Positions 1 to 18,133 of a DNA stretch of 64,000 bases are shown in pieces (position 1 is the stretch's first letter; every line of letters begins with the position of its first letter). The stretch is from positions 248,001 through 312,000 of IMG/VR virus record IMGVR_UViG_3300032242_000723. One strand, written 5' to 3'. Position numbers and translations under genes: made by a program. A model generated the notes under the pieces. That model did not search any database, had not been told where the DNA came from, and saw nothing but the letters and a program-made list of their open reading frames with translations.

Positions 1-630
1 CTATATGAAAATCTAGTAAACGACGATTGTTATTACTCGTTTTATAATCCTGCACTACCCTTTAATACTGATACTACACTGCAAGAACAAATAGTTGAAT
101 GTTTACCTAATATACATAAGAACATAGATTATGTTGGTAAGCTTAGACTGAATTTCGATGATAATAGAACTAATCCAGTGGACGTTATACCAGAAGACAT
201 GCCACTATTCGATGATACGTACTTCTCTCTAGTTACTGAAACAATGTACTATGATTGTACTGTACCTAAATATAAACTCGGATATGATCTACCATTCTTG
301 AACTGTACATTCTTCTCTGAGAAGGTTTACAAGCCAATTATCATGATGCATCCTTTTCTATTGGTCGCTCGCCCACACTCTATTAGAATGCTCAAAGAAC
401 ATGGCTTCAAAACGTTTCATCCCTATATAGATGAGAGCTATGACAGTATAGAAGAAGATGGCGATAGAATGCAAGCTATCATCGCTGAAGTTAAGAGATT
501 ATCTAACCAAACTCCATTGGAATGGTTAATATGGTGTTCTAATGTTAAATCTATCGTAGAATATAATCAAAAATATCTCAAGGAAAACGTCAGTTACATT
601 GTGAATAAAGATTTGTCAGTATTCAAGTGA
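1..630 (+). CDS. Partial (5'-truncated) glycosyltransferase-like/modification protein
   Basis: Frame 1 is open from base 1. Motif FFSEKVYKP..HPF..GFKTFHPYIDESYD resembles the SEK-x-x-KP motif of phage GT-like proteins. Confidence 0.5.
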   Translation, partial: LYENLVNDDCYYSFYNPALPFNTDTTLQEQIVECLPNIHKNIDYVGKLRLNFDDNRTNPVDVIPEDMPLFDDTYFSLVTETMYYDCTVPKYKLGYDLPFLNCTFFSEKVYKPIIMMHPFLLVARPHSIRMLKEHGFKTFHPYIDESYDSIEEDGDRMQAIIAEVKRLSNQTPLEWLIWCSNVKSIVEYNQKYLKENVSYIVNKDLSVFK

Positions 631-668: not shown

Positions 669-2888
669 TTGGTAGATTTCAAGCTAACCTCTTTGGCTAA
701 CAAAAATACCAAGCCAAAAGAAAGACCAACTGTAGACATAACTGATTCTAGTCATCAATCAATGCTAGAAGCCATCTCTCCCTATGTTAAGCCTGCCGTT
801 CAGAAAAATCTAACACCGATTTATGTAGATTACAAGACACGCAAGTCATCGATGGTACTTGTCACCTGTCCACTTTGGAGTCCTTATATTCCCCCGTTAG
901 CAATAGCTAGACTGTCGGGTATAGCTAAAGCAGCAGGATACGAGACACATATCATGGATTTGAATGTGAAGGCTTATACTATTTTCCGTGATGATTGGAT
1001 CGTACACCAAAAGGTACCATTCACATTGTGGGACACATCATCAGCATGGCATTGGGCAGGCGGCATATATTATAATGATGTTCATCCTGTACTAGAACCT
1101 ATGCTCATGGAAGCAGTTGATCAGATCATTTCACTAAAGCCCTCAATAGTTAATTTCACTGTATACAGCAGTAGTGAAGAACCCACTAAGTGGATGTGTC
1201 AAGAGATCAAGCGTAGAGACCCTAATATACTAATCGCAGTAAATGGACCTAATGTACACAAAGCTTGGTATACTATCCAACCCTACTATGATTATGTTAT
1301 TGTCGGTGAAGCTGAGAAAAATCTATTGGTAATGCTTACTGAGATTGAAGAAGGTAAACTTCATACTGAACCAAGAGTATTAACACAGCCAGAGAACGAA
1401 CGTATCAATATTAATAATCTTCCTATGCCAGACTATGACTCAATCGATTTCTCATTGTATGAAATACCTAACGGCATTAATAGTGAAATTAGTAGGGGAT
1501 GTACTGCTAAATGTACCTTTTGTGATGAAACACACTTTGTACGTTATAGACAACGGCAAGCAATAGATTTGATTACAGAAATAGAGTGGCTCTATTATAA
1601 TAAAGGTACTGACGTAATATGGTTTATTGATAGTCTTATCAATGGTGACTTAAATGAACTAAGAGCGTTTGCGATAGCTTTACGAGAAAAAGACTTAAAG
1701 GTTAAGTTCACTGGATATGCCCGATGCGACGGTAGAATGAATCTAGAATATCTACAAGATTTAGCAGACGGCGGCTGTATCATGTTTAATTTTGGATGCG
1801 AAAGTGGAAGCCAAAAAGTACTTAACGATATGCACAAGGGTGTGACTATTGCCGAGATGGAGCAGAACTTCATCGACTGTAAGAAGGTTGGTATCTACTG
1901 TGCTACGAACTGGGTAGTTGGATTTCCTACTGAGAACTTTCAAGATTACTCTGACACGATGACATTCATGTGGCGTATGCGTAATATGAACATCAATAAT
2001 ATGGGATTGGGGATTGGCTTTAGCCCAGGGCTTGAAACTATAATAGCACAGAATCCACATAAGTACAACGTCTCATATCACAAATATCAATCGCATTGGA
2101 TTAGCAATGACTTTACCATTGGTGGCACACATGTTATGACTAGGGTAAAGAACATCCATATATGGCTAGATTTGTTTACAGGATGCACTGATATTGTGGT
2201 TGGATATCCAACCAGACCGTCACTGGCACGAGATCATTATAAGATTACATTGAATGACCCGTCAGTATGCAAAGAAATATACTATGAGAAGTTTGATTAT
2301 AACATCATTCCTCCCATTAATGATACGAACACATTTGCTAATCATCTTGTAAATGAGATGTGGCCGTTCTTTAGAAATTTATGGCGAGCACGGGGAGGAT
2401 ATACAGCAGAAATATTGTTTAATCCTGATATCGACTTGAAAGAGTTCGGCCACCAATTTGGTCCTGGCATGTATAATGCCGTATACAAGTTTACGATCAG
2501 TGACGATGGCATATGGGAAGCAGACTTTGATATTAAGTTTGATCAGATCGATAATCCATTAAATGACCCAACTATGCCAGGCTGGCGTCCAGGACCGTTT
2601 TATGCACAAGATCCCTCTCGTATGCAATCTAATACAGCTAAGCGAGCAAGAAAGTTAGCGAAGCCTACATGGGACATAGTGAATGGTAGATCAGATCAAG
2701 ATTTTACTGATTTGCTTAATGAAGAGAGTAAGTTAAATAACATTATAGATTTCTCGTTTGAACTAAAGTGGAAGGGTAACGGAGACTGGAGTAATGTAGA
2801 TGACTATCGTGTTGATACAACTACTAGTCAACCTAAAAATAAAGTCAAAACAACTACATTAATTAATTTTAATAGGAAGAATAAATGA
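669..2888 (+). CDS. Cobalamin-binding radical SAM protein (class B methyltransferase-like)
   Basis: CxxxCxxC motif (CTAKCTFC). N-terminal B12-binding-like domain (PPLAIARLSGIAKAAGYETHIMDLN ... VIVGEAE). FGCESGSQKVLNDMHKG and VVGFPTE motifs. TTG start after AAGGAA. Confidence 0.85.
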   Translation: MVDFKLTSLANKNTKPKERPTVDITDSSHQSMLEAISPYVKPAVQKNLTPIYVDYKTRKSSMVLVTCPLWSPYIPPLAIARLSGIAKAAGYETHIMDLNVKAYTIFRDDWIVHQKVPFTLWDTSSAWHWAGGIYYNDVHPVLEPMLMEAVDQIISLKPSIVNFTVYSSSEEPTKWMCQEIKRRDPNILIAVNGPNVHKAWYTIQPYYDYVIVGEAEKNLLVMLTEIEEGKLHTEPRVLTQPENERININNLPMPDYDSIDFSLYEIPNGINSEISRGCTAKCTFCDETHFVRYRQRQAIDLITEIEWLYYNKGTDVIWFIDSLINGDLNELRAFAIALREKDLKVKFTGYARCDGRMNLEYLQDLADGGCIMFNFGCESGSQKVLNDMHKGVTIAEMEQNFIDCKKVGIYCATNWVVGFPTENFQDYSDTMTFMWRMRNMNINNMGLGIGFSPGLETIIAQNPHKYNVSYHKYQSHWISNDFTIGGTHVMTRVKNIHIWLDLFTGCTDIVVGYPTRPSLARDHYKITLNDPSVCKEIYYEKFDYNIIPPINDTNTFANHLVNEMWPFFRNLWRARGGYTAEILFNPDIDLKEFGHQFGPGMYNAVYKFTISDDGIWEADFDIKFDQIDNPLNDPTMPGWRPGPFYAQDPSRMQSNTAKRARKLAKPTWDIVNGRSDQDFTDLLNEESKLNNIIDFSFELKWKGNGDWSNVDDYRVDTTTSQPKNKVKTTTLINFNRKNK

Positions 2889-4251: not shown

Positions 4252-5727
4252 ATGAACTATATTGGAATAAGCTGTGGCTTTCACGATGCGGGACTAAGTG
4301 TAGTAGACGATGAAGGTAGGATATTGTTTGCTGGTCACAGTGAGCGATATAGTATGCAAAAGCATGACAAAGACCTATGTGCCGATATTATTCAAGATGC
4401 TCTTGGCTACGTGACAGATGACTATGAGTTGCACTACTATGAGAGGCCATTGCTCAAAGCTGTACGACAGTTCCAAGCAGGACAAGCATTAGGACCCTTT
4501 AGTGCTAAGTCAGTTATCGGCAAAGATAACATGACCATGCTAAGTGATAAGCCGGTCAAGACGCATGGACATCACCTAAGTCACGCGGCTGCTGGATTCC
4601 AAACAAGTCCATACAGTGATGCAACTGTAGTTGTTATTGATGCCATTGGTGAGCTTGACACTATCACTATATATGACGCATCATATGATAAGAGTGGCAA
4701 AGCAGTCTATAAGAAACTATGGAGCCGCATGTATCCTGACTCGATTGGTCTTTTTTATTCTGCGATGACAGCTAGAGTTGGCTTACGTCCACTAGATGAA
4801 GAATATATTCTAATGGGTATGGCCGCGTATGGGAATGCTGACAAATGCATAGACGAAATGGAAGAATCTATTGACTACGAGATGCTAGATTTCTACTATA
4901 ACTTTCATACCGGTGTCGATAGCGAATTCCTAAAGGGGGCAGATGATATGGACATTGCCGCGGCGGCACAGTCTGTTGTTGAAAGGTTAATCAATATGGT
5001 CATGAGTAAAGCCAGACAATATGGCAAGAGTAAGAATCTTGTATATGGAGGCGGCGTTGCATTAAACTGTTTAGCGAATAGAAATCTCGGAGAATATTTT
5101 AAGAATATTTGGATCATGCCTAACCCAGGTGACGCAGGTAACAGTGTAGGTGCAGCAGCATTAGGCTATGGTCGCAAGTTACAGTGGAATAATGCGTTTC
5201 TAGGATACGACATCAAAGGTGATTATCCAGTTGACAATATCATCGATAAGTTACATAATGATAAGATAGTAGGAGTGGCAAGTGGTAGAGCCGAGTTTGG
5301 CCCTAGAGCCTTAGGCAATCGTTCATTACTAGCAGACCCACGAGGACCAGACATTAAGGATAAGGTAAATGCAATCAAACGAAGACAACAGTTCAGACCA
5401 TTCGCACCCGTCATACTTGAAGAGCATCTTACTCAGTACTTTGACATGCCTATTAATTGGGATAGTAGCCGTTATATGCAAGTCATTGCTACTTGTAGGT
5501 ATCCTGACTTATTTCCCGCTATCGTTCATGCTGATGGGACTAGTCGTGTTCAAACAGTTCCAAAAGATAAATCAGGAATCAGACGACTCTTAGAACGTTG
5601 GTATGACGAGACCGGCTGCCCTATGCTACTTAACACATCGTTGAATATACGCGGTGAGCCAATGGTAAATAACCGTTCCGATGCAGATCGGTTTGAAAAA
5701 CTTTATAACGTTACTGTGTGCTCATAA
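4252..5727 (+). CDS. Carbamoyltransferase (NodU/CmcH/TobZ family)
   Basis: GISCGFHDAG, HHLSHAAAGF, GGVALNC, GDAGNSVGAA, EFGPRALGNRSLLADP, FRPFAP, LLNTSLN motifs. Confidence 0.92.
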   Translation: MNYIGISCGFHDAGLSVVDDEGRILFAGHSERYSMQKHDKDLCADIIQDALGYVTDDYELHYYERPLLKAVRQFQAGQALGPFSAKSVIGKDNMTMLSDKPVKTHGHHLSHAAAGFQTSPYSDATVVVIDAIGELDTITIYDASYDKSGKAVYKKLWSRMYPDSIGLFYSAMTARVGLRPLDEEYILMGMAAYGNADKCIDEMEESIDYEMLDFYYNFHTGVDSEFLKGADDMDIAAAAQSVVERLINMVMSKARQYGKSKNLVYGGGVALNCLANRNLGEYFKNIWIMPNPGDAGNSVGAAALGYGRKLQWNNAFLGYDIKGDYPVDNIIDKLHNDKIVGVASGRAEFGPRALGNRSLLADPRGPDIKDKVNAIKRRQQFRPFAPVILEEHLTQYFDMPINWDSSRYMQVIATCRYPDLFPAIVHADGTSRVQTVPKDKSGIRRLLERWYDETGCPMLLNTSLNIRGEPMVNNRSDADRFEKLYNVTVCS

Positions 5728-5734
5728 GTAGTAG

Positions 5735-8700
5735 ATGCTGAGAGATGTCTTTTATTACGGCGATAAGCCAAATGTACACCCACGAGAACAATACGCAGAA
5801 TCATTTGATGATGCTAGACAGAAGTCTACTACAGAACATTTTTGGATCATTAATGAGTTCTGCGATTATCGTGGATTTGATTGGGACTGGGACTTTGAGT
5901 TCCTTCCTGACGAAGACGTATGGGCAGAACAACATACTAACATATGGCCTAGCCAGCATCAAAAAGATAGTGGCACTTGGCTGTGTTCAAGTGAAGAATA
6001 CGATTTAAACCTATTTATATATCGTAATGATGTTACCCCGATTAAGCGTAAAAATATCAAGACATCTAACTGGGTTGAATTTGACCTAATTGATCAGACG
6101 AAGTTCGACTTCTCATGGCATCCGGACCCAACTGATCCTCCTTATATCTATAAATGGGGCAGCAAGTTTGCTCCGGCACAACTTAAGACATGCTTAGAAT
6201 ATCATGTTGAAGGTGCAACTAGAATAAAGTACATGACTAGTATCGTTGAACTATTACCGGATACAGATCGCTGGATCGAACATCAGGCTATCGACAAAAC
6301 TAAGTTTGATATGTCATGGCGTCCAGACCCAATGGATCCCCCTTTTATCTATATTTGGGGTAATAAGTATATAGAAGGTACATTAAGACCTACACTAGAA
6401 TATCGTGTACCCGATGCAATACATACGAAGTATATGCCTGATTTAATCTCAGTACTCCCTGAATATGATAGATGGGTAGAAGTACAGGCGGTAGATAAGA
6501 GCAAGTTTGACTTTAGTTGGCGACCAGATCCAAGAGAACCGGCATATATCTATACATGGGGTAATAAGTATATTGATGCTGAGTTTATACCTACGCTAGA
6601 ATATCATTGCGAAGGCGCAACAGAACGCAAGTATATGACAAATGATGTTGTTGTACTTCCTCAATATGATAGATGGGTAGAAGTACAGGCGGTAGATAAG
6701 AGCAAGTTTGACTTTAGTTGGCGACCAGATCCAAGAGAACCGGCATATATTTATGTTTGGGGTAATAAGTATATAGAAGGTACATTAATACCTACATTAG
6801 AGTATCATTGTCCCGATGCGACTAAAGTAAAGTATATGACAAACGATGTTGTTGTACTTCCTCAATGGGACAAATGGCAAATTCCTGACAATCTTGACAA
6901 GGCATCATTTGACTTTAGTTGGAGACCTGATCCACGTGAACCTGATTTTATTTACGAGTTTGCAACTCAATGGCAGAAGACAGGTGGACCGCGTTATATT
7001 GTAGAGAACGCAAAACAAAGAAAGTTTATAAATGATATACGAGCTACTATTTTGCCCACACACGCAAATTGGACTATTCCAGACAATATTGACATTAACA
7101 GTTTTGACTTTAGTTGGCATCCTGACGATACCGATCCTGCTTATATCTATGTATTTGGTACTCAATGGGCAACAAGTGGCGGACCAATTTACACTGTTGA
7201 CAATGCTACTAAAACAAAATATGTAGGAGTTCAGGTAGCGTCTGCTGTTGCATCTAAAACTAATTGGAAGTATAATTCAACTGTTGTAGATGAGAGTCAG
7301 TTTGATTTCTCGTGGCATCCAGATCCAAGAGAACCTGCATATATCTATGTATGGGGTAACAAATATGAAGACGGTAAATATAAATCTACAATAGAATATC
7401 ATGCCGAAGGTGCTACTGATGTCAAGTATATGACAAATGATGTCGCTTTGCTTCCTGATTGGGATAGATGGGTATTTCTTAAAGAGGTAGATAAGAACAA
7501 GTTTGACTTTAGTTGGCGACCAGACCCATTAGAACCCGCCTATATCTATACCTGGGGTAACAAGTATGAACCTGCTGAAATATCTCCGACGTTAGAATAT
7601 CATTGTCCTAACGCTACTGATGTAAAGTATATGGGCGATACAGCTCCTGTACTCCCTGAATGGGATAGATGGCAAATTCCTGATAACGTAGATAAATCTA
7701 AGTTCGACTTTACCTGGAGACCGGACCCAAGAGAGCCGCCCTTTATGTATGCGTTTGCTACTGTATGGAATGATAGGGGCGGCCCCATCTATGTTGCACC
7801 TACTTCAACTAAATTCAAATACATTGAAGATGTTAAAGCAGTATTGTTGTCGAGTACTGATAATTGGGAAATTTCTGAAGGAATAAATGTTTCTGACTTT
7901 GACTTCTCGTGGGTTCCGCACCCTCAGGCACCACCTTATATCTATCAGTTTGGTACATTAGGAGATCCTGACGACGGTCCAAGATATGTTTCTCCTGGTA
8001 ATAACGGCGAAATCGTTAAACTTAGAAGAGTAACAAAGAAGTTTGAAAAAGAACAGGTTGTCGCACAGTACTACATCGAAACAACGTTAGCTGATCTAGC
8101 CAGCAAATACCCTAGAAAATTATTTTGGGCTAAACAAAAAAATATTGATTATTCAACGTTCGACTTCACATGGCGACCTACGATTGAACAGGCAGAATAT
8201 GTACATGTATTTGGTTCGTCTGATTCAGATGCCACCCATACATATTTAGTTAACGGTATGCAATGGGCCAAAGGCAATCGTGAATTAAACTGGGTCAAAG
8301 ATGATAAGCTTGATGACAAGACACTGTTCAACATATTCAAGAAGTCTGATATGTTCTATGTTGACAAAGGTAATTTAGAAGCACAAGTAAGATTTGAAAA
8401 GCTTAGACTATTACACCCGCAGATACAAAAGACACGCTATCTAAACTCGTGGGTCGATACTATAAAGCGTTGTAATAATCGTGCAACGAGTGAATTGATA
8501 TGGGTACTCAACTCTGAGCTTGACTATACTGACTTTGACTTTGAATACTATCCTAATCCTTGGCAGATGAAGATGGTACATGTATTTGGTACACAGTGGT
8601 CACATTGGGGAACAACTTTCATGGTTAACAGAGAAACATTTGCCGAAGACACAAAGTATATTAATATCATTGAGCATCTATCTAACATTAACTTTGTAAA

Positions 8701-10069
8701 GAACATCAGAGCTACAGCAACTCAATGTGTATACGATACGATTATTATTGATCACGGTAATAAAGAACTTGATCGAGTCGTAGAACAAGTTACTAGCAAA
8801 ATATCTGGTAAGAACGTAACTGTTGTAAAGTATAACGAAAGTTATTTGCAAACCTTAAAGGATATTGTCGCACGACAGCAAGATAAAAAAGAACATTATC
8901 TGTGGCTATGTAGCAGTGTATGCGACTACTCATCGTTTGATTTCTCATATACTGTTGATCCATTTGCTAGAGATAATCTACATGTATTTGCTAGTGGTAG
9001 TCAGAAGTTTGGTGATACTTTCTTTATTGACGTAAATAAGGCCAAAGAGATTATTGATAAAATGTTGTCGTTAGAATATTATCATAAGGTCAACTATAAT
9101 AATGCACAAAAGGTCACCCGATTACCAGAGCCAATCATTGTTACGAATAATGATACATTAATTGACGCGGCGATGCATATTGAAGGTTTCCCTTATGCAA
9201 CAATCATCACAAGTGATAATAAAGATATCACTGTAATGCCAACAGAGCCTATGAATCTGTGGGCTCCGGAAACTAAGAACATCTTAGTTACATCTACTGG
9301 TGCAACTCGTATTGTTGTGCCTCGTGAAGTCAAAGATCATGTAAGCAAAGAACTATACGACTATCCGTATATTAAGAAAGCATCTAAGCTTGCTATCTCA
9401 TCGCCTATGGACATCGTGTATTTGAGCAACGGTGAGACAGGTGCGGAAGAGAACTGGGAACATCTGCAAAAGATCACAAAGGGATTAAAGAACCGTGTTG
9501 TTCGTGTTGATGGGGTCAATGGTCGTGTTCAAGCATATCATGCAGCATTGGAAGCGAGTGAGACACCTTGGGCATTCACTGTGTTTGCTAAGTTAAAGAT
9601 CAGTCCAAAGTTTGACTTCAACTGGCAACCAGATAGAATGCAAGCTGCAAAGCATTATATCTTCCACGCAAAGAATCCTGTCAACGGCTTGATTTACGGA
9701 CACCAGGCAATGATCGCATACAACAAGCGACTTACATTAGCTAACAAGGGTAACGGACTTGACTTCACTCTAGACGATGAACACGAAGTTGTGCCATTGT
9801 TGTCAGGTATCGCAAACTATAACACAGACGAGTTTTCCACTTGGCGTACATCTTTCCGTGAAGTGTTGAAGTTGAAGGCTGAAGATAGTGACATTGCTCG
9901 TACACGATTAGATGCGTGGCTTAACAAGGCAGAGGGTGACTTTGCTCAATATAGCATCAAGGGTGCGATTGACGCTGATGAATATTATGACGAGGTTGAT
10001 GGTGACTTTGATATGCTGAAGCTTAGTTACGAGTGGTCCTGGCTGAAAGAAAAGTTCGCTAACTCATAA
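5735..10069 (+). CDS. 1444-aa protein with about 15 FDFSW(R/H)PDP repeats and degenerate glycosyltransferase-like domains
   Basis: About 10 tandem ~67-aa units (FDFSWRPDPREPAYIYxWGNKY...PTLEYH..GAT..KYM) plus degenerate copies. C-terminal GT-A-like segment MDIVYLSNGE...VDGVNGRVQAYHAA...FTVFAK. Confidence 0.75.
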   Translation: MLRDVFYYGDKPNVHPREQYAESFDDARQKSTTEHFWIINEFCDYRGFDWDWDFEFLPDEDVWAEQHTNIWPSQHQKDSGTWLCSSEEYDLNLFIYRNDVTPIKRKNIKTSNWVEFDLIDQTKFDFSWHPDPTDPPYIYKWGSKFAPAQLKTCLEYHVEGATRIKYMTSIVELLPDTDRWIEHQAIDKTKFDMSWRPDPMDPPFIYIWGNKYIEGTLRPTLEYRVPDAIHTKYMPDLISVLPEYDRWVEVQAVDKSKFDFSWRPDPREPAYIYTWGNKYIDAEFIPTLEYHCEGATERKYMTNDVVVLPQYDRWVEVQAVDKSKFDFSWRPDPREPAYIYVWGNKYIEGTLIPTLEYHCPDATKVKYMTNDVVVLPQWDKWQIPDNLDKASFDFSWRPDPREPDFIYEFATQWQKTGGPRYIVENAKQRKFINDIRATILPTHANWTIPDNIDINSFDFSWHPDDTDPAYIYVFGTQWATSGGPIYTVDNATKTKYVGVQVASAVASKTNWKYNSTVVDESQFDFSWHPDPREPAYIYVWGNKYEDGKYKSTIEYHAEGATDVKYMTNDVALLPDWDRWVFLKEVDKNKFDFSWRPDPLEPAYIYTWGNKYEPAEISPTLEYHCPNATDVKYMGDTAPVLPEWDRWQIPDNVDKSKFDFTWRPDPREPPFMYAFATVWNDRGGPIYVAPTSTKFKYIEDVKAVLLSSTDNWEISEGINVSDFDFSWVPHPQAPPYIYQFGTLGDPDDGPRYVSPGNNGEIVKLRRVTKKFEKEQVVAQYYIETTLADLASKYPRKLFWAKQKNIDYSTFDFTWRPTIEQAEYVHVFGSSDSDATHTYLVNGMQWAKGNRELNWVKDDKLDDKTLFNIFKKSDMFYVDKGNLEAQVRFEKLRLLHPQIQKTRYLNSWVDTIKRCNNRATSELIWVLNSELDYTDFDFEYYPNPWQMKMVHVFGTQWSHWGTTFMVNRETFAEDTKYINIIEHLSNINFVKNIRATATQCVYDTIIIDHGNKELDRVVEQVTSKISGKNVTVVKYNESYLQTLKDIVARQQDKKEHYLWLCSSVCDYSSFDFSYTVDPFARDNLHVFASGSQKFGDTFFIDVNKAKEIIDKMLSLEYYHKVNYNNAQKVTRLPEPIIVTNNDTLIDAAMHIEGFPYATIITSDNKDITVMPTEPMNLWAPETKNILVTSTGATRIVVPREVKDHVSKELYDYPYIKKASKLAISSPMDIVYLSNGETGAEENWEHLQKITKGLKNRVVRVDGVNGRVQAYHAALEASETPWAFTVFAKLKISPKFDFNWQPDRMQAAKHYIFHAKNPVNGLIYGHQAMIAYNKRLTLANKGNGLDFTLDDEHEVVPLLSGIANYNTDEFSTWRTSFREVLKLKAEDSDIARTRLDAWLNKAEGDFAQYSIKGAIDADEYYDEVDGDFDMLKLSYEWSWLKEKFANS
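6462..6750 (+). repeat. 88-bp identical direct repeat with 201-bp period inside the repeat gene
   Basis: 6462-6549 is identical to 6663-6750. Confidence 0.9.
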
Positions 10070-10077
10070 GATTGTTG

Positions 10078-10106
10078 TTGACATATGTTTCCCGTTTCGC
10101 TATATT
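10078..10106 (+). promoter_or_regulatory. Sigma70-type early promoter
   Basis: TTGACA-17 bp-TATATT; ATG 5 nt downstream. Confidence 0.8.
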
Positions 10107-10111
10107 AAATC

Positions 10112-10360
10112 ATGGACAAACAAACGGAGATTGATAACATGAACTGTATCAACTGTAACAAGCCCGATGACGGCACCCTCACTAAGCCCTACGAAAAGGG
10201 TATCGATGTTGAGTCATATTTGGCAAGTCAAGGCCTAAACTTTTTTGTCTGCGAACAATGTTTAGATCACAACGAGTCTCAGCTTAAGCAGCTAGGATTT
10301 ACCGAAGAGTTGGAATTCTCGCAATATATGCGAGATAAATCAGCCAAGAGCTGGCGTTAG
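10112..10360 (+). CDS. Small protein with CxxC...CxxC putative Zn finger
   Basis: CINC and CEQC motifs. Confidence 0.6.
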   Translation: MDKQTEIDNMNCINCNKPDDGTLTKPYEKGIDVESYLASQGLNFFVCEQCLDHNESQLKQLGFTEELEFSQYMRDKSAKSWR

Positions 10361-10365
10361 GATAC

Positions 10366-10557
10366 GTGATGCAACGGTACGAGGCAGAACGGCTTCTAGA
10401 GTCTCTTGAGGGAATCATATACAATCGCATTGCGATATCGGAACATCCAAATGATCGGCCCCGCAATGACAGGCATCAAGCCGAGATGGAACTAGAACGA
10501 GAAGTTGCAATTAGTATCCTTGAATCTATTCCAAATGGTGAGCCGTGGGTAGAATAA
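10366..10557 (+). CDS. Small hypothetical early protein
   Basis: ORF packed in a small-gene cluster. Confidence 0.55.
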   Translation: MMQRYEAERLLESLEGIIYNRIAISEHPNDRPRNDRHQAEMELEREVAISILESIPNGEPWVE

Positions 10558-10730
10558 GTAACTGCCCTCGTTCTCCATGTGCTACTTCTTTCCCGTCATT
10601 AATTGATGGTAAGTGTCGTGCTTGTCGTACACGAAAGGACAAGCGGCTTTATCGCGAGCATATGGATGCCTTTCGGAAAAAGTGTGAAGAAAAAAGAGCC
10701 GCATCACGGTTTAAAACGGAGAACAAATAA
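10545..10730 (+). CDS. Small Cys-rich basic hypothetical protein
   Basis: CPRSPC...CRAC; overlaps its neighbours. Confidence 0.5.
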   Translation: MGRISNCPRSPCATSFPSLIDGKCRACRTRKDKRLYREHMDAFRKKCEEKRAASRFKTENK

Positions 10731-11053
10731 TGAGTATTGATAGCGATGAAGCAGAATATCAAAAGTATAAAGAAGAACTAAACAATCACATGTGGGATAT
10801 CAGGCAAAGAATTGATGCCTCTGAGATTGCTATGCGTAAGGTTCTGTGGGTTCTGGCTAACATCGCAGACAAGTATGATGCTAACGGTCTAGATGACGAT
10901 GCTCGCAAATATTGGGGCGTTGATAGTGTCAACACAAAAGATCCAAAAAAGATTGAACTTTACACAGGGCGCGGCGGTCAATGTCTATTGACTCTTCAAG
11001 ATTGCTTTGATGCCCGTGATGCATTAAACTATAACCCCCCAAAGGATAAATAA
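10730..11053 (+). CDS. Hypothetical protein
   Basis: Stop/start coupling with the upstream ORF. Confidence 0.65.
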   Translation: MSIDSDEAEYQKYKEELNNHMWDIRQRIDASEIAMRKVLWVLANIADKYDANGLDDDARKYWGVDSVNTKDPKKIELYTGRGGQCLLTLQDCFDARDALNYNPPKDK

Positions 11054-11491: not shown

Positions 11492-11623
11492 ATGAACGAA
11501 TATGCCAAACCTACTAGGTACGTACACGATGTACACTGCAATGCTGGTCGCGATAAACCTAAGTGGACTCCAGGAACTGGGTGTTCATGTTATCGTCTTA
11601 TGGACACTAGCCTAAAGAAATAA
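11492..11623 (+). CDS. 43-aa Cys/His peptide
   Basis: Read manually: MNEYAKPTRYVHDVHCNAGRDKPKWTPGTGCSCYRLMDTSLKK. Confidence 0.45.
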   Translation: MNEYAKPTRYVHDVHCNAGRDKPKWTPGTGCSCYRLMDTSLKK

Positions 11624-11635
11624 TCAAGGAAGAAC

Positions 11636-11664
11636 TTGACAAGCTATCCGAAAGTTAGTATATA
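11636..11664 (+). promoter_or_regulatory. Sigma70-type promoter
   Basis: TTGACA-17 bp-TATATA. Confidence 0.65.
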
Positions 11665-11698
11665 TACTATAGAGTGTAATCACAGAAAAGGAACTACC

Positions 11699-12196
11699 AT
11701 GAAGAACAAGCTAATCGCAGGCATCGCAATGTCTGCTGTACTAATCGGAGCCCTAACAGCAACTCCCGCACAATCTCGTGATAGGAATAGTTGGATCGCG
11801 CCTCTAGTTGGTGGCATGATCATCGGCAGCATTATGAACGATTCGGCAAGGTATCAAGAACAACAACGACAATACCAAGCTCAGCAACGATATCAGGCAC
11901 AACGGCAATATCAAGAACAACGGTATCAACGATATCAAGAACCACAACGTCCTTATGATTTGCCACTAACTAGGGTAAAGCCGAATCAAATTGATGCTCC
12001 TCTTTTCCCACCTTCTGACGGTCAATCTACTTATGGATCATCGACTGAAACTTATCTTCCTGTTACAATTTGCAGCAGAGAATGGAATGCTGACAAAACT
12101 CATGTAATGGAGCGTTGTTCAAAGCAGTATATGAACCAACGATATATTACATGTGACGGTAGCGACGATGAAAGCGGCATTTGTTGGCAACAATAA
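11699..12196 (+). CDS. Exported protein with signal peptide, Gly-zipper-like segment and Gln/Tyr/Arg-rich repeat
   Basis: Start corrected to ATG 11699 after AAGGAA. MKNKLIAGIAMSAVLIGALTATPAQS signal; WIAPLVGGMIIGSIM; QQRYQAQ repeats; four C-terminal Cys. Confidence 0.7.
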   Translation: MKNKLIAGIAMSAVLIGALTATPAQSRDRNSWIAPLVGGMIIGSIMNDSARYQEQQRQYQAQQRYQAQRQYQEQRYQRYQEPQRPYDLPLTRVKPNQIDAPLFPPSDGQSTYGSSTETYLPVTICSREWNADKTHVMERCSKQYMNQRYITCDGSDDESGICWQQ

Positions 12197-12198
12197 GA

Positions 12199-12229
12199 TT
12201 GACATGCACTGACAGACAGTGTATAAATA
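12199..12229 (+). promoter_or_regulatory. Dual promoter of tmRNA (sigma70 plus T4-type late TATAAATA)
   Basis: TTGACA 12199-12204, 17-bp spacer, TATAAATA 12222-12229. Confidence 0.75.
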
Positions 12230-12231
12230 AG

Positions 12232-12596
12232 ATTGAAACTGTTGATACAGGATCAAAGTTGGCGTAGACGCGGGTGCGAATCCCGCCGCCTCCACCATAG
12301 ATACACTAAAGGTGAGAACGGCTACCTCACGCACCAGAAATGGTATAGTAACGATAAAACGTGAAGAGATCCAGGATTGCATCTGGTTAGTGTGTCTATG
12401 ATGGGGGCGACTAGAATCGATACGCAATGGCGACGACGAGTAGGTTTCCGGTAAGTTACGACCGACAATTTGTACAAAAAACGTAAATGCTAACTTTATT
12501 GCTAGCAATGACAACGAGTTTGTAGCTATGGAAATGGCTGCTTAATCTGAGTTATTTGGAGCTTCGGGGATGTGCTCTATAACCTAAACATCCTCA
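12232..12596 (+). ncRNA. ssrA: Circularly permuted (two-piece) tmRNA
   Basis: T-arm GCGGG-UGCGAAU-CCCGC plus CGCCUCC-A-CCA ending at 12297 lies upstream of the 5' end GGGGGCG (12403), giving a 7-bp acceptor stem with G3-U70. Tag ORF 12489-12545 encodes ANFIASNDNEFVAMEMAA* after GUAAAU. The outer ends are approximate. Confidence 0.92.
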
Positions 12597-13367
12597 CTTA
12601 TCTGGGTACACCCAATATTTTGTACCATCTTTCCTAGATATCAGTTTTCTTCCTGTTACTGTTTGAGATTGTTTATCACGCCCTTTTCTGCCGTTAACAG
12701 CAGCGTTAGGGTTAGATAATCCTTTATTCCAGGCCGCTTTCCCTTTTTTAAATCCCGGAACCGCTGTTCCTTTTATCCAGGCAATCTTACCAGAACATAC
12801 CTTTGAACAAGTTTTTTGTTTTTGTGTATAGGTAGTAAAATCTTCGCAACACGCTGGGCATTGTTTAGTATGCAAGAGTTTGATTTTTTTTGTATTTCCT
12901 ACTTTCTTGGTAGTATTGTTTCGTTTCTTTTTTGTCACAGGACAATCAAGTGGAATAAATGACAGTAGCCCACTCTGCCTTAGTTCAACTTCTACTTTAC
13001 TATATCCTTTATTCCAGGCTGGTTTAGTTCTGTTTTTGGTATGTCCCTTACAACTTCCGCCCCTGGATAGTTTCTTTTGATTATAATATCTAACTGTTTT
13101 GTTCTGTATATTAGTGGTCCAATACAGTTCAGTGTCTTTGATCATATTAAGCCAGCGTTGTTCTGCATTACGCAAATCATCTAATTCACCATTAACATAT
13201 TCTAGTACTCTAAACTTAAAGGTATCTGGTCGTTTCTTGTGTGCCCGCAACATCATTGTGTTAGAACAAATATATGCATCTTCTATTAGTCCTTGATGTC
13301 CACCGACATAATAGAACTTTGCTTTGGTATCAAACCAAAGATACACGTAGCCAGTATAAATATTCAT
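12594..13367 (-). mobile_element. Free-standing GIY-YIG (Seg-like) homing endonuclease
   Basis: GYVY-x10-YYVGGH N-terminus, FKFRVLE..E..WL, YYN; repeated AWNKG/AWIKG DNA-binding-module motifs and a CPAC...CSKVC Zn ribbon. Confidence 0.8.
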
Positions 13368-13437
13368 GCTGATAGCTCCTTAATAGCATTAGAGTAGTTG
13401 GAGATTCCCGTCTCGCGAACTATATTAGTATTTATAC
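13368..13437 (-). promoter_or_regulatory. Conserved leader element, copy 1 (late promoter + hairpin + RBS)
   Basis: Minus strand: TATAAATA, TAGTT-CGC-GAGA-6nt-TCTC-C-AACTA, CTCTAATGCT, AAGGAG, CTATCAGC, ATG. 48 of 55 nt identical to 20045-20099. Confidence 0.85.
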
Positions 13438-13460
13438 ATACCTCATTGATAAATACTCGT

Positions 13461-16400
13461 ATGAATCTCAATGAACTCCATTCTTTCAAACTTGCAGATG
13501 CTATCAAGTTTCATACGGAACTTAATCCAAAACTTTGGAAAAATGACCAGTTAGATCCATTAGTTAGAAAGCAGTTATTGATTATTGCTGAGGACTTTGT
13601 TGAGGAGTTAGGAATACCTGATTTGGATATAGTTGATGTAACTATCTCAGGTTCTAACGCCGCATTTACCTGGACTAAACATAGCGATTTAGACCTTCAT
13701 ATCCTCGTAAATATGAGCGAGTTGCACCAAGACGCAATCTACCGCGAACTATTCAGAGCAAAGAAGACATTATATAATAGTAATCACGATATCACGGTGC
13801 ACGGCATCCCAGTTGAACTTTATGTTCAAGATTCAGCCGAACCTGTTGTATCGTTAGGTGAGTACAGTATCCTACATGATAAGTGGATCAAGGTCCCTGT
13901 TCGTAGAGCGGCCAAGTTAGATCAAAATGCTGCCAAAGCAAAGTTTGACCAACTTAAAGATTTGATTAGTGTTGCACTTAAGACTAAGCATAGCAAAAAG
14001 ATCAGTAAAGCCCTAGCATTAATCAAACGTTATCGCCAAGCTGGTCTTGACAAGGGCGGCGAGTTCAGTCCTGAGAACCTTGCCTTTAAGGCTGTTAGAT
14101 CGCAAGGTGCGATTGATGCACTATATGCAATGCGTGATAAGTTACACAGTGCAGAGTTAACGATTGAAGAAGGCTACGCTGGAGCCAAGATGAAGTTCTT
14201 GAAGCCAGGTGAATTGCGTGGATCGTACACGCCTGCTAAACTTACCGCATTAGGATTCAAGAAGTCACAGAACGGCTCATGGTTCATTCTACAATCTAAG
14301 TGGGAAGAGTTGCGTAAGACTGGTCAACTATATGAGACCGATGTTGTTGCAGAAAATCTCAGAAAAGAGTTTGAAGACTTTGATCCTGAAAACTTAGCTG
14401 AAGCACTTGACTCTACACCATATCCTTATGAAGAGATTTCGTCCACTCACCATAACTATATTGCTAGTAGAAGCCAATACATATTCACTACTGAAGATAA
14501 TCTGCCTTATGTAGCTATGATATTCAAATATCCAGGCAATAGAATCCGTATTGAGTTTAAGTCCACAAAGCAAACTCGTGATTTTCTTGGGTTCGAGGTG
14601 ACAGGTACAGGTGATGCCCGTAAGGTATTCGCTACTGTGATTGACATTGTGAAGAAGTATGTAGATAAGCATCATCCTGTTGAAATATCATTCTCAGCCA
14701 AAGAACCAAGCAGAGTCCGTTTATACGATGCGTTCTTGAAAAGACTGGATAGAGAGTTACCTGATTATGAAGGCAAATCGGGTCCAGGATACGAACCAGA
14801 TAATACATATTACCATCTCACTTTAAAAAATCAAAAGATAGACGAATCACTTGACTCACAACCATATCCTTATATTTCAACTATCGGCACAACAGGTGCA
14901 CATGAATATGCGTTCACTACGGATGACGATAACGAATATGAAGCCATAATCATTAATCAAAAATTTGGGATCCATGTATCTTTTTTTCTAAAACAAAAAC
15001 AACATAAAAATGGCCTAATCATAACCCGCACAGGTATAACGGGTACCGGCGATGCTCGTAGAGTGTTCGCTACTGTTATTGATATCGTGAAGAAATTCGC
15101 AGCAGCAGAGAAGCCTGAAGCCATAGTGTTTACTGCAAGTGAACCTAGCAGGATCCGTTTGTATGACGCATTCGTTAAAAGATTAGACAGAGAATTACCT
15201 GAGTATGCTGAGACTCGTAAAGAAAAAGGCATGGCAGAATGGTTCGTACTTCTACGCAAAACTAAGAAGATAGACGAAGCAACCGACCGTGACAGTGCGA
15301 TTAAGCAGATATTGAAGTTACAGAACACACAAGGTCGTTCACCAAGTGAGATAGAGGCATCAAAAGCTATCATCGCTAAAATGATGAAACGCTATAACAT
15401 TCATTCAAAAGAGTTGCTACCAGTTGAACGTAATCCATACCAAGATCGTATCAAACAAGCACGAGCCGAGCGTGATGTAGCAGGCGATATGCTAAAGGCA
15501 GAGTGGGATAGATTCAAAGGTGGGATCAAGGATAAGGTGTCTACTATCTTTAAAGAAGACTTAGACGAAGCACTTGATTCCCAACCATATCCATACGAGA
15601 TTGAAGAAGATAGCATAGCCTGGCAGATCAGCACCTTCACGACAAGTGACCGAAACCGTTATAAGGTTTGGGTAGTGAAATACAGTAATAAAGAAGTTTC
15701 GGTTGAATTCTCCTATCAAGGTAACGATGACATTGACACGAACTCAATGGAAATTGAAAACATAGGTGATGCCCGTAAGGTATTCGCTACTGTGATTGAG
15801 ATTGTAAAGAACTACGCTAAGAAGTATAAACCTAATAAGATTTCTTTTGACGCTGATCCAACTGAACCAAGCAGGATTCGTTTTTATAGTGCTCTTGTCA
15901 AGAGAGCAGACCGAATGTTGCCGGACTACGAAGATCAATCAATTGACTTCCTAGGTGACTTCAACCTTGTTAGAAAAGGTTATCAGTTTAACGAATCAAT
16001 AGTCTATCATGTGACCCCTACTAAAAATGTAAAGTCTATTATGCGTGACGGATTACGACCTCAAGTCGGCAACCGTTCGAGTAAGATTACAGGTGAAGAT
16101 AATGGTATCTTTGTCTTCAATAGCAAAAACGATGCAGAAGATGCTATAATGAACTGGCTCGGTGATGAGTTCGGTGAAGATGCTGAGTTAACCTTATTAG
16201 CAATCGATGCTGAAGGATTAGAACAGCATATGTCTACGGGTGCAGGATACGAAACAATCATGGATGTAGGGATCGAGCCTAGTCGTATTCGAGTAACTCA
16301 GGATATTCTTGAAGCATCTGGTTACATTCCAAGCAAGAAGGAAGCGAACGATCCTCGCTTCTCAACTGCGTTAACGGTAGATGTGAAACCTGATTCAATA

Positions 16401-16481
16401 CAAAAGAACGCTAAGGCATTTGGTTCAAAAACTTCACGAGCAGGTATTCCACCTCAAGCACGGACTGACGGCAAGATTTAA
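13461..16481 (+). CDS. 1006-aa polyvalent polyprotein: nucleotidyltransferase + 3 copies of an unknown domain + DUF2786-like + ADP-ribosyltransferase-like
   Basis: Start ATG 13461, 5 nt after TAAATA. SGSNA..SDLDLH Pol-beta NTase motif; three E(A/S)LDSxPYPY...GDARKVFATVI...EPSRIRLY units; KQILKLQ..SPSEIEASKAIIAKMMKRYNI; YHVT..NVKSIMRDGL.P. Confidence 0.8.
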   Translation: MNLNELHSFKLADAIKFHTELNPKLWKNDQLDPLVRKQLLIIAEDFVEELGIPDLDIVDVTISGSNAAFTWTKHSDLDLHILVNMSELHQDAIYRELFRAKKTLYNSNHDITVHGIPVELYVQDSAEPVVSLGEYSILHDKWIKVPVRRAAKLDQNAAKAKFDQLKDLISVALKTKHSKKISKALALIKRYRQAGLDKGGEFSPENLAFKAVRSQGAIDALYAMRDKLHSAELTIEEGYAGAKMKFLKPGELRGSYTPAKLTALGFKKSQNGSWFILQSKWEELRKTGQLYETDVVAENLRKEFEDFDPENLAEALDSTPYPYEEISSTHHNYIASRSQYIFTTEDNLPYVAMIFKYPGNRIRIEFKSTKQTRDFLGFEVTGTGDARKVFATVIDIVKKYVDKHHPVEISFSAKEPSRVRLYDAFLKRLDRELPDYEGKSGPGYEPDNTYYHLTLKNQKIDESLDSQPYPYISTIGTTGAHEYAFTTDDDNEYEAIIINQKFGIHVSFFLKQKQHKNGLIITRTGITGTGDARRVFATVIDIVKKFAAAEKPEAIVFTASEPSRIRLYDAFVKRLDRELPEYAETRKEKGMAEWFVLLRKTKKIDEATDRDSAIKQILKLQNTQGRSPSEIEASKAIIAKMMKRYNIHSKELLPVERNPYQDRIKQARAERDVAGDMLKAEWDRFKGGIKDKVSTIFKEDLDEALDSQPYPYEIEEDSIAWQISTFTTSDRNRYKVWVVKYSNKEVSVEFSYQGNDDIDTNSMEIENIGDARKVFATVIEIVKNYAKKYKPNKISFDADPTEPSRIRFYSALVKRADRMLPDYEDQSIDFLGDFNLVRKGYQFNESIVYHVTPTKNVKSIMRDGLRPQVGNRSSKITGEDNGIFVFNSKNDAEDAIMNWLGDEFGEDAELTLLAIDAEGLEQHMSTGAGYETIMDVGIEPSRIRVTQDILEASGYIPSKKEANDPRFSTALTVDVKPDSIQKNAKAFGSKTSRAGIPPQARTDGKI

Positions 16482-16517
16482 GTTGACACCCGACTCATAT
16501 TCATATACAGTATGAAC

Positions 16518-16778
16518 ATGAGTGACCGATTTAATACCGCAGAAGACGCCCGCAAATATGTGGATAACTTCCGTTATACCAATATTGACATCACTTTTAC
16601 ACAAGATACAACTCGGATCCTCAATAACGTTATCAAGTTGGTTACTGAACTCAGCCAGCTTGAGGTCGAGGCACGGCAGTCACGCAAAAATCGTAAGGTT
16701 GATGAGTGTAAGATACGGCTTGATCAAGCCATTGACAGACTAGAAAAGTTGATGATTATCGCTAAACTCATGAGTTAA
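16518..16778 (+). CDS. Hypothetical helical/coiled-coil protein
   Basis: Downstream of TTGACA(16483)-17 bp-TACAGT; alternative start at 16512. Confidence 0.65.
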   Translation: MSDRFNTAEDARKYVDNFRYTNIDITFTQDTTRILNNVIKLVTELSQLEVEARQSRKNRKVDECKIRLDQAIDRLEKLMIIAKLMS

Positions 16779-16796
16779 AAGGTTTACCCAAACTCT

Positions 16797-16825
16797 TTGA
16801 CACCATCATGTATATTGATTATATT
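16797..16825 (+). promoter_or_regulatory. Sigma70-type promoter
   Basis: TTGACA-17 bp-TATATT. Confidence 0.8.
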
Positions 16826-16875
16826 CACATCATAGAGACGCAAGAGGCGATCTCGTAAACATAAGGAACTATAAA

Positions 16876-18015
16876 ATGTCTCAAGTATCTACCGATCTAA
16901 CGGTTAACTCCGTACAGGCTCGCAAGGCCATTCTACAAGCATTCAAGGTCAAGCGACCCGTGTTTCTCTGGGGTCCCCCAGGTATCGGTAAATCGGAAGT
17001 TGTTTCCGATATCACTGATGAACTCGGCGGCTATATGGTCGATCTGCGTATGGCGCAGATGGAACCTACTGATATTCGCGGTATTCCTTACTTCAATAAG
17101 GAAAACGGCAAGATGGACTGGGCTGAGCCTGTCGATCTTCCAAGTGCTGAACTCGCTGCACAATATCCAATCGTCGTTCTCTTCCTCGATGAAATGAACT
17201 CGGCACCCCCTGCTGTTCAGGCAGCTGGTTATCAGTTGATCCTCAATCGTCGTGTTGGTAAGTACAAGCTTCCTGATAACGTGGTTATTGTCGCTGCTGG
17301 TAACCGCGATAGCGATAAGGGCGTTACATATCGTATGCCGATGCCGCTCGCAAATCGTTTCGTTCACATTGAAATGCGTCCTGACTTCGCATCTTGGCAA
17401 GCATGGGCTGTCAACAAGGGCATTCACCGTGACGTTGTTGGTTATCTCTCGTTCGCTAAGCAAGACTTGTATGACTTCAACGCTAAGTCGTCTTCTCGTG
17501 CATTTGCTACCCCGCGTTCGTGGTCCTTCGTTAGCGACATGATCGCCAATGAAAATGTCCCTTCGACTAGCGAAGATACGCTTGACAAGTTGGCAGGCGC
17601 ACTTGATCAAGATACTCTCTTGCATCTTGTCTCGGGTTCTGTTGGTGAAGGCCTTGCTACGAAGTTCATGGCACACCGCAAGTATGCAAGTCGTATGCCT
17701 AATCCTGCTGACATTCTGTCGGGTAAGGTCAAGGATCTTGACGTGAAGGAAATCTCTGCGATGTATTCGTTGACGATTTCTATGTGTTACGAGTTGCGTG
17801 ATGCAGTCACTAACAAGGTCGATCATAAGCAGTTTCATATCATGATTGATAACTTCCTCGAATATATGATGAAGAACTTTGAGACTGAGTTGGTTATCAT
17901 GGGTGCAAAGGTCGCTCTCAAGACCTACAAGCTTCCTATTAAGCATGAGGATTTGAAGACGTTTGATGCGTTCCACAAGCAGTTCGGTCGGCATATTGTG
18001 GAAGCAGGTAGCTAA
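16876..18015 (+). CDS. MoxR/CbbQ-like AAA+ ATPase
   Basis: Walker A GPPGIGKS, Walker B LFLDEMN, AAGN, PLANRF, TPRSW. Confidence 0.9.
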   Translation: MSQVSTDLTVNSVQARKAILQAFKVKRPVFLWGPPGIGKSEVVSDITDELGGYMVDLRMAQMEPTDIRGIPYFNKENGKMDWAEPVDLPSAELAAQYPIVVLFLDEMNSAPPAVQAAGYQLILNRRVGKYKLPDNVVIVAAGNRDSDKGVTYRMPMPLANRFVHIEMRPDFASWQAWAVNKGIHRDVVGYLSFAKQDLYDFNAKSSSRAFATPRSWSFVSDMIANENVPSTSEDTLDKLAGALDQDTLLHLVSGSVGEGLATKFMAHRKYASRMPNPADILSGKVKDLDVKEISAMYSLTISMCYELRDAVTNKVDHKQFHIMIDNFLEYMMKNFETELVIMGAKVALKTYKLPIKHEDLKTFDAFHKQFGRHIVEAGS

Positions 18016-18024
18016 GCTACCCGC

Positions 18025-18063
18025 TACAGGGGGAGGTTAGAGACGTCCTCCCCCTGTATTTTT
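18025..18063 (+). terminator. Rho-independent terminator
   Basis: 12-bp stem TACAGGGGGAGG/CCTCCCCCTGTA followed by T5. Confidence 0.85.
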
Positions 18064-18075
18064 GTATAAAATATC

Positions 18076-18104
18076 TTGACAAATTGTCTCATATGTATTA
18101 TATA
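18076..18104 (+). promoter_or_regulatory. Sigma70-type promoter
   Basis: TTGACA-17 bp-TATATA. Confidence 0.7.
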
Positions 18105-18133
18105 TTAAGACTTAATCAAGCAAAGGATATCTC

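Follow-up and report, generated by a model that had tools for sequence, protein, structure and literature searches.

In the 64-kb stretch of DNA analysed here (the window: bases 248001-312000 of the 333-kb IMG/VR virus record IMGVR_UViG_3300032242_000723), a gene that occurs once in the genome encodes a 1444-residue protein combining modules of the glycosyltransferase A (GT-A) fold with ten tandem repeats of 65-67 residues. Our reading, to which we assign a probability of roughly 55%, is that this protein is a glycosyltransferase-type component of a jumbo-phage sugar-modification island, in which the C-terminal domain, T4, would act without a metal and the repeat rod and several truncated modules would be non-catalytic. 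The reading draws on sequence profiles and predicted structures. We found no description of the protein family in the literature.

Profile hidden Markov models (HMMs) divided the protein into the following modules, listed from the N to the C terminus in window coordinates (DXD, the Asp-X-Asp motif; NDP, nucleoside diphosphate).

5735..10069, + strand: whole gene, 1444 residues; open frame with HMM-based module map
5735..6064, + strand: N module, residues 1-110; minimal GT-A-like alpha/beta module, mean column identity 0.77
6065..8062, + strand: ten tandem 65-67-residue repeats, residues 111-776; all-beta, about four short strands per unit
8063..8335, + strand: T1, residues 777-867; truncated module, nearest relative of the repeat by hhalign
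8336..8725, + strand: T2, residues 868-997; mini GT-A/NDP-transferase-fold module of about 130 residues, E928-L-D930 at the DXD position
8726..9133, + strand: T3, residues 998-1133; mini GT-A-like module homologous to T2, VCD at the DXD position; universal core
9134..9397, + strand: small beta domain, residues 1134-1221, from predicted secondary structure; present in all short members; universal core
9398..10066, + strand: T4, residues 1222-1444; full-size GT2-like GT-A domain plus helical tail

Module folds and the origin of the repeat

Family alignments were used to build AlphaFold2 models of the tail (residues 777-1444; predicted local distance difference test, pLDDT, 87.9; predicted template modelling score, pTM, 0.74) and of the N module with four repeats (residues 1-378; pLDDT 90.1, pTM 0.76, with the repeats at pLDDT 94-97). 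Modules N, T2, T3 and T4 matched GT-A or nucleotide-diphospho-sugar-transferase folds only, and showed the Rossmann-like alpha/beta/alpha topology of the GT-A common core described by Taujale et al. (PMC7185993). Foldseek aligned the tail with the multi-GT-A enzymes of the PDB, namely K4 chondroitin polymerase (K4CP; the best match, E 5e-6), LH3, Mimivirus R699, heparosan synthase, ArnC and COLGALT1, with the Swiss-Prot models of LH3, B3GLCT, ExoO, WaaE and PgaC, and with viral multi-glycosyltransferase proteins. A search of the residue 1-378 model that was independent of Foldseek returned GT-A or NDP-transferase proteins as all 50 of its 50 best matches; these aligned to residues 1-107, and none to the repeats (residues 111-378). 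The small beta domain has no similarity to the other modules of the protein in module-versus-module hhalign comparisons.

The repeat array is regular, and degenerate copies of its core lie in the segments on either side. A regular-expression scan located 14 FDF-type motifs (FD[FM][STNE][WY]) between residues 124 and 1293, the first ten of them spaced 65-67 residues apart. An HMM derived from the ten units recovered each of them (independent E-values 4e-24 to 1e-38) together with weaker copies at residues 798-841 (2e-10), 923-977 (5e-8), 1057-1094 (6e-5) and 1292-1313 (6e-5); a non-significant copy at residues 37-53 brings the total to 15. These results bear out a first-pass annotation of the window, which had described a Trp/Pro/Asp repeat of about 67 residues with some 15 FDF(S/T)W(R/H)PDP cores, about ten of them regular, and a degenerate form of the core in the terminal segments: there are ten regular tandem units, the repeat region contains 4.8% Trp, 9.2% Pro and 9.8% Asp, and the weaker copies lie in the modules that flank the array. 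The units follow the consensus W..iD...FDfsW.Pdp..ppyIYvfG.....Y...gA...KY and fall into two subtypes, WGNKY...PTLEYH (67 residues) and F[AG]TQW...GGPxY (65-66 residues). Units R3 and R4 are 85% identical in amino acids and 86% in nucleotides, and by this measure form the sole recent duplicate; since the other units share only 22-69% of their residues, most of the array is old.

The same annotation had called the repeat unrecognised and proposed that it is a duplicated subdomain of a GT-A fold, and both statements found support. Neither the unit nor the array matched a known repeat or carbohydrate-binding domain: the best Pfam hit of the repeat was Agarase_CBM at 18.8 bits (cut-off 26.3), the best PDB match of the array by Foldseek had an E-value of 0.2, AFDB returned InlB and Internalin repeats at a probability of 0.07 or less, and nothing significant was found in the AFDB clusters or among the Atlas structures; Atlas feature matches were noise, with named clusters scoring 0.60 or less. 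For the whole protein and six pieces of it, Pfam and PHROGs gave nothing above threshold, and phmmer and profile searches of the PDB sequences had no match for any part. The repeat was not found in other genes of the 333-kb genome.

Profile-profile alignment with hhalign, in contrast to the libraries, related the repeat to the modules of its own protein. Over the full unit length it aligned with T1 (99.3%, E 2e-20) and with positions 56-113 of the 131 positions of T2 (98.7%), and further with N positions 37-107 (97.7%) and with T3 (94%); the part shared with T4 is limited to a 20-column FDFxWxPD...YIF stretch. T3 is homologous to T2 along its whole length (98.4%), T1 (98.2% against T2) corresponds to a shortened T2, and N is similar to T1. 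N, T1, T2 and T3 are truncated modules of 90-135 residues that retain the nucleotide-binding half. Because of these alignments with T1, T2, N and T3, we identify the 67-residue unit as the product of serial duplication of the second, C-terminal half of a mini GT-A module. It comprises the Trp-bearing strand before the DXD position, an Asp aligned with T2 D930, the FDFSWxP loop and a further two strands. No library searched offers a precedent for half GT-A modules in tandem array, and the repeat is possibly a new type of structural repeat. The high pTM argues for a fixed arrangement of the units and against a beads-on-a-string chain; the predicted array thus probably packs as a rigid all-beta rod.

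The DXD position of T4

In T4 the DXD motif is replaced by F1284-A1285-K1286 (nt 9584-9592). At this site the protein reads TVFAKL, whereas LIDGDN or VVDGDN is found in two distant standalone relatives, a paralogue encoded in the same genome (genome positions 231297-232244) and gp348 of Ralstonia phage RsoM2USA. The consensus of the large-protein family is x-(G/A)-K-L-K with K1286 invariant, and short family members carry the replacement as well. Since the standalone relatives read DGD exactly where T4 reads FAK, and since K1286 is invariant, the loss of the motif is genuine. Between T4 and its DGD-bearing relatives 24 columns are invariant at an overall identity of 25-27%. By these comparisons T4 is a GT-A domain of GT2-like type whose ancestry lies in a DXD-bearing viral family. 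The standalone relatives are viral, uncurated proteins of about 300 residues (1164 representatives at 50% clustering), some of which are fused to GT-B domains. The paralogue itself is a standalone protein of 315 residues that has kept DGD, and gp348 was the sole match, to T4, in a tblastn search of the GenBank phages. An Atlas feature search with T4 returned unnamed viral clusters only.

The remaining modules differ from one another at this position. T2 carries E928-L-D930 (nt 8516-8524), with E928 conserved to at least 95% and D930 to at least 90%; in N, T1, T3 and the repeats only the last Asp of the motif survives, which in N is D44. The first-pass annotation had described the GT-like domains as lacking DxD, and had placed FAK and NEF at the corresponding positions. 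Its placement of FAK is exact (residues 1284-1286), but NEF lies two residues upstream of the N-module position that aligns with E-L-D of T2, and the general statement is right for T4, N, T1 and T3 but not for T2. Of the DxD motif that follows beta4 in the GT-A superfamily T4 thus has no copy, and T2 alone has an E-x-D.

Loss of DxD within a GT-A fold has two known outcomes, metal-independent activity, as in GT14 and bacterial GT6 enzymes, or a pseudo-enzyme, as in COSMC (PMC7185993). The second outcome corresponds to the earlier suggestion that the protein is a wholly non-catalytic pseudo-glycosyltransferase scaffold or lectin, all of whose modules are inactive and which organises the neighbouring enzymes through multivalent binding of sugars or nucleotide sugars. 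T4 lacks the DXD that its standalone relatives possess, N, T1 and T3 as well as the repeats combine a retained fold with a lost motif, and N, T1, T2 and T3, with 90-135 residues each, cannot accommodate the 231-position GT-A core (PMC7185993); the variable copy number of the repeat is that of binding-module arrays, and precedents exist in COSMC and in the AC domain of LH3, a non-catalytic accessory element of glycosyltransferase fold (PMC7185993, PMC6082870). T4 is nevertheless the most conserved part of the protein (mean column identity 0.81), shares some 24 invariant positions with its DXD-bearing relatives in spite of their low overall identity, and has its invariant Lys precisely where a metal ligand would be, which points to a compensated charge more than to a decaying domain. 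We therefore regard a purely non-catalytic protein as rather doubtful.

Among characterized systems, the closest in fold are LH3/PLOD3 (with GT, AC and LH domains), COLGALT1 and Mimivirus R699, which likewise contain several GT-A folds per chain, some without catalytic motifs. They are the top Foldseek matches of the tail, yet share only 7-11% sequence identity with it; the phage protein has no hydroxylase domain, its truncated modules are much smaller (90-135 residues), and no known member of this group has a tandem half-module array. Escherichia coli K4CP, the Pasteurella heparosan, hyaluronan and chondroitin synthases and LARGE1 are soluble multi-GT-A chains that work with genes supplying uridine diphosphate (UDP) sugars, to which a UDP-glucose dehydrogenase in the phage island corresponds. 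These enzymes, however, have two complete DXD-bearing catalytic GT-A domains, as in K4CP, PmHS2 and LARGE1, whereas the sole full-size domain of the phage protein, T4, has no DXD. T4 also differs from the GT2 enzymes SpsA, ExoO, WaaE, SunS/ThuS and hyaluronan synthase and from GT12 B4GALNT1 in lacking a Pfam GT2 match and in its change from DXD to x-(G/A)-K, a loss within the GT-A fold that it shares with GT14, bacterial GT6 and COSMC (PMC7185993). The standalone viral family is homologous to T4, but has kept DGD and has no repeats. Taken together, the protein is predicted to fold like multi-domain GT-A proteins with accessory pseudo-glycosyltransferase modules, and may well work like them.

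Family architecture and genomic setting

Within the searched length range (up to 2527 residues) the family comprises more than 1540 homologue clusters at 90% identity, all unnamed and many of them on contigs of 300-530 kb. The best 120 homologues consist of an N module of about 108 residues, 10-28 repeats (mode 20-24) and a tail of about 690 residues; the protein of the window has the fewest repeats among them, and complete proteins within one 90% cluster have either 22 or 24. BFVD contains members of 804 and 1076 residues. When T4 alone was the query, most of the homologues retrieved were C-terminal pieces of this giant protein encoded on short contigs; they enriched the alignment but brought no annotation. 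Three short forms were found at loci in metagenome-assembled genomes (MAGs): T3, beta domain and T4 (423 residues); N, one repeat, T3, beta domain and T4 (607 residues); and N, three repeats, T3, beta domain and T4 (741 residues). These architectures define T3, the beta domain and T4 as the universal core and the array as an extension of none to about 28 units. A description of the short homologues as 'tail-only' was rejected, as the HMM map shows either the N module, one to three repeats and the core, or the core alone.

The three MAG loci were considered as cellular homologues and rejected, since both MAGs concerned carry terminases 63-75% identical to that of this phage. In the Haliscomenobacter MAG, the two contigs that encode the homologues also encode the terminases; for the Legionellales locus the link to a terminase is made at the level of the MAG. 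We take the loci to be mis-binned phage DNA, firmly so for the Haliscomenobacter contigs, and the family appears to be confined to jumbo phages. On one Haliscomenobacter contig (G001:C1) the gene of the terminase large subunit is split into two pieces about 1.2 kb apart (5249-5992 and 7238-8041, matching query residues 274-513 and 7-275), which may reflect an intron, an intein or a homing-endonuclease insertion.

Conserved ends (0.77 for N, 0.81 for T4) that flank a less conserved spacer (0.57-0.65) of variable and predicted rigid length recall a molecular ruler, in which the rod would hold the N module and a catalytic C-terminal end apart and the number of repeats would set the length of a phage-made glycan. 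In the WbdD- and WbbB-type O-antigen rulers functional sites are split by a rigid variable-length spacer in the same way (PMC11231755), but that spacer is a coiled coil, used in ABC-transporter-dependent O-antigen assembly, and the all-beta rod predicted here has no homology to it, so that the likeness is one of analogy only. The N module, moreover, is minimal and has no evident active site, the 0-3 repeats of the short forms fit poorly with measurement of length, and there is no evidence for a polymer product. A ruler is in our view unlikely.

The window, part of a jumbo-phage genome, encodes a terminase, tail proteins, a single-stranded DNA-binding protein, helicases and an RNA ligase. Two jumbo myoviruses, PA5oct and Phosso, have terminases 48-49% identical to the one encoded here, and a megablast search with 20 kb gave no match. 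The gene of the large protein is the last one of a metabolic island, of which the window contains the following part (SAM, S-adenosylmethionine; ORF, open reading frame).

1..630, + strand: 3' part of a gene of about 390 residues that starts upstream of the window; unannotated family defined by blastp across loci
669..2888, + strand: B12-binding radical-SAM enzyme (Pfam); orthologues in loci L003, L006 and L007
2885..4130, + strand: two unannotated ORFs of 251 and 167 residues, flanked by the radical-SAM and carbamoyltransferase genes; L003 and L006 have a counterpart of the first
4252..5727, + strand: NodU/CmcH-type carbamoyltransferase (Pfam Carbam_trans_N and _C; phrog_1601), separated from the large gene by a 7-nt gap

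The carbamoyltransferase gene directly precedes the large gene in all five phage loci (5/5) and is nearby in two of the three short-form loci. Upstream of the window lie five to six radical-SAM/SPASM enzymes, the UDP-glucose dehydrogenase and a methyltransferase. The companions in the four other phage loci are genes for B12-radical-SAM enzymes, UDP-glucose dehydrogenase, epimerase/dehydratase, DegT aminotransferase, sugar C-methyltransferase or sulfotransferase, and members of the family always have sugar-modifying enzymes as neighbours. In a 531-kb relative, genes for an S-adenosylmethionine decarboxylase, an Asp/Arg hydroxylase-like protein and a sulfotransferase follow the large gene (L003:16468-16842, 17853-18326 and 18326-18940), which suggests that the chemistry of the island varies between phages.

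This setting bears on two further interpretations. A length-variable, probably rigid, acidic repeat protein (net charge about -55) in which no transmembrane segment was found could be a virion fibre or decoration, with a rod that stands out from the capsid or the tail and bears a GT-A-like, glycan-binding head, and variation in repeat number is typical of fibres. The gene, however, sits in the metabolic island, the structural genes begin about 19 kb downstream, and the protein matches no PHROG structural family and bears no likeness to known fibre folds; we judge this role decidedly unlikely. The strong negative charge also argues against DNA binding, which was set aside. Alternatively, the array might itself be a substrate, a folded carrier each of whose units is modified by radical-SAM, carbamoyl or glycosyl enzymes encoded nearby. 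The five to six radical-SAM/SPASM genes just upstream and the conservation of the hydroxyl residue in FDF[ST]W (75% Ser, 14% Thr) would suit a carrier. But conservation across loci does not extend to the SPASM enzymes, the residues conserved within the repeat are for the most part aromatic, Pro or Gly, as is typical of a structural core, and the short forms with 0-3 repeats have the same enzyme partners, which makes a carrier highly improbable. The radical-SAM row (L005, genome 228001-248000) consists of ORFs 4727-6127, 8461-9747, 9744-10976, 11538-12857 and 12842-13825; three of these genes have the unusual order of SPASM N-terminal to the radical-SAM core.

By blastp, every locus has at least two copies of the family of about 390 residues. 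Here it is found at window positions 1-630 (start at genome position about 247449) and at L005:13771-14940 and 15685-16854, and further copies occur in L003, L004, L006, L007, L011 and L013; it matches viral Atlas clusters only and is sometimes fused to epimerase or methyltransferase domains. A weak lead links it to GT10 (fucosyltransferase)-like proteins (Atlas feature score 0.79), and an argument that the large protein is the only glycosyltransferase of the island was dropped for this reason.

Downstream of the large gene, the window encodes on the + strand a 1027-residue protein with three DUF6934 stretches and several PHROG matches of unknown function (13398-16481), a MoxR-like AAA ATPase (16876-18015) with equivalents in L003, L006 and L007, and a 432-residue HNH endonuclease (18134-19432; phrog_1314, E 8e-110). 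In related phages the MoxR-like gene is followed by a DUF2201 (VWA-like) gene, a pair conserved downstream of the island. Relatives encode a Porin_4 porin-family protein a few kilobases downstream of the large gene (L004:18611-19492 and L007:18824-19711), and L007:23833-24183 encodes a homologue of ribosomal protein L7/L12.

Proposed function and significance

In the reading that we prefer, the NDP-sugar enzymes and the carbamoyltransferase of the island would make a modified sugar, which T4 would bind and probably transfer, with Lys1286 and Lys1288 standing in for the cation. As non-catalytic additions, the truncated modules and the rod would tether the enzyme to a repetitive target or set its spacing there; for this target a glycan chain, the virion or a cell surface are candidates.

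Several observations weigh against this proposal. Loss of DXD is a hallmark of the pseudo-glycosyltransferases COSMC and the LH3 AC domain (PMC7185993, PMC6082870). For the xED base (helix alphaF), the G-loop and the C-His of GT-A enzymes, T4 offers the invariant residues D1343, D1347 and E1376 as candidates only. T4 has no match to PF00535 or any other glycosyltransferase family of Pfam at E-values up to 10, and even its standalone relatives score only 17-19 bits against the GT2 family (cut-off 23.3); the one true PF00535 gene of the genome lies elsewhere, at 119966-120361. Because the island holds other candidate transferases in the family of about 390 residues, the large protein need not be the catalyst. 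The rigidity of the rod, finally, is read from pLDDT and pTM and not from coordinates.

A more far-reaching idea, which we put forward tentatively and regard as possible rather than probable, is that half a GT-A module, made up of the strand ahead of the DXD position, the DXD-site loop and a beta hairpin, became an autonomous, stackable unit of a new kind of rigid beta-rod. The units would have kept the former donor- or sugar-contact loop, FDFSWxPDP, as a glycan or metal site, giving a lectin track or ruler of 0 to about 28 units that sets the reach or the duration of action of an attached DXD-less transferase on a polymeric target.

Neither Pfam nor PHROGs detects the family, so that among the longest genes of environmental jumbo phages thousands are now labelled 'hypothetical'. 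The GT-A-derived architecture, together with the conserved island of NDP-sugar, radical-SAM and carbamoyl genes, points to an unexplored phage glycan pathway that may serve virion glycosylation, host-surface remodelling or the production of a secreted polymer. The repeat offers a clean, datable case of an enzyme-fold sub-domain turned into a structural repeat, for which related phages still have intermediate forms with 0, 1, 3, 10 and 22-28 copies, and the switch from DGD to xGK provides a simple test of metal-independent catalysis versus pseudo-enzyme evolution.

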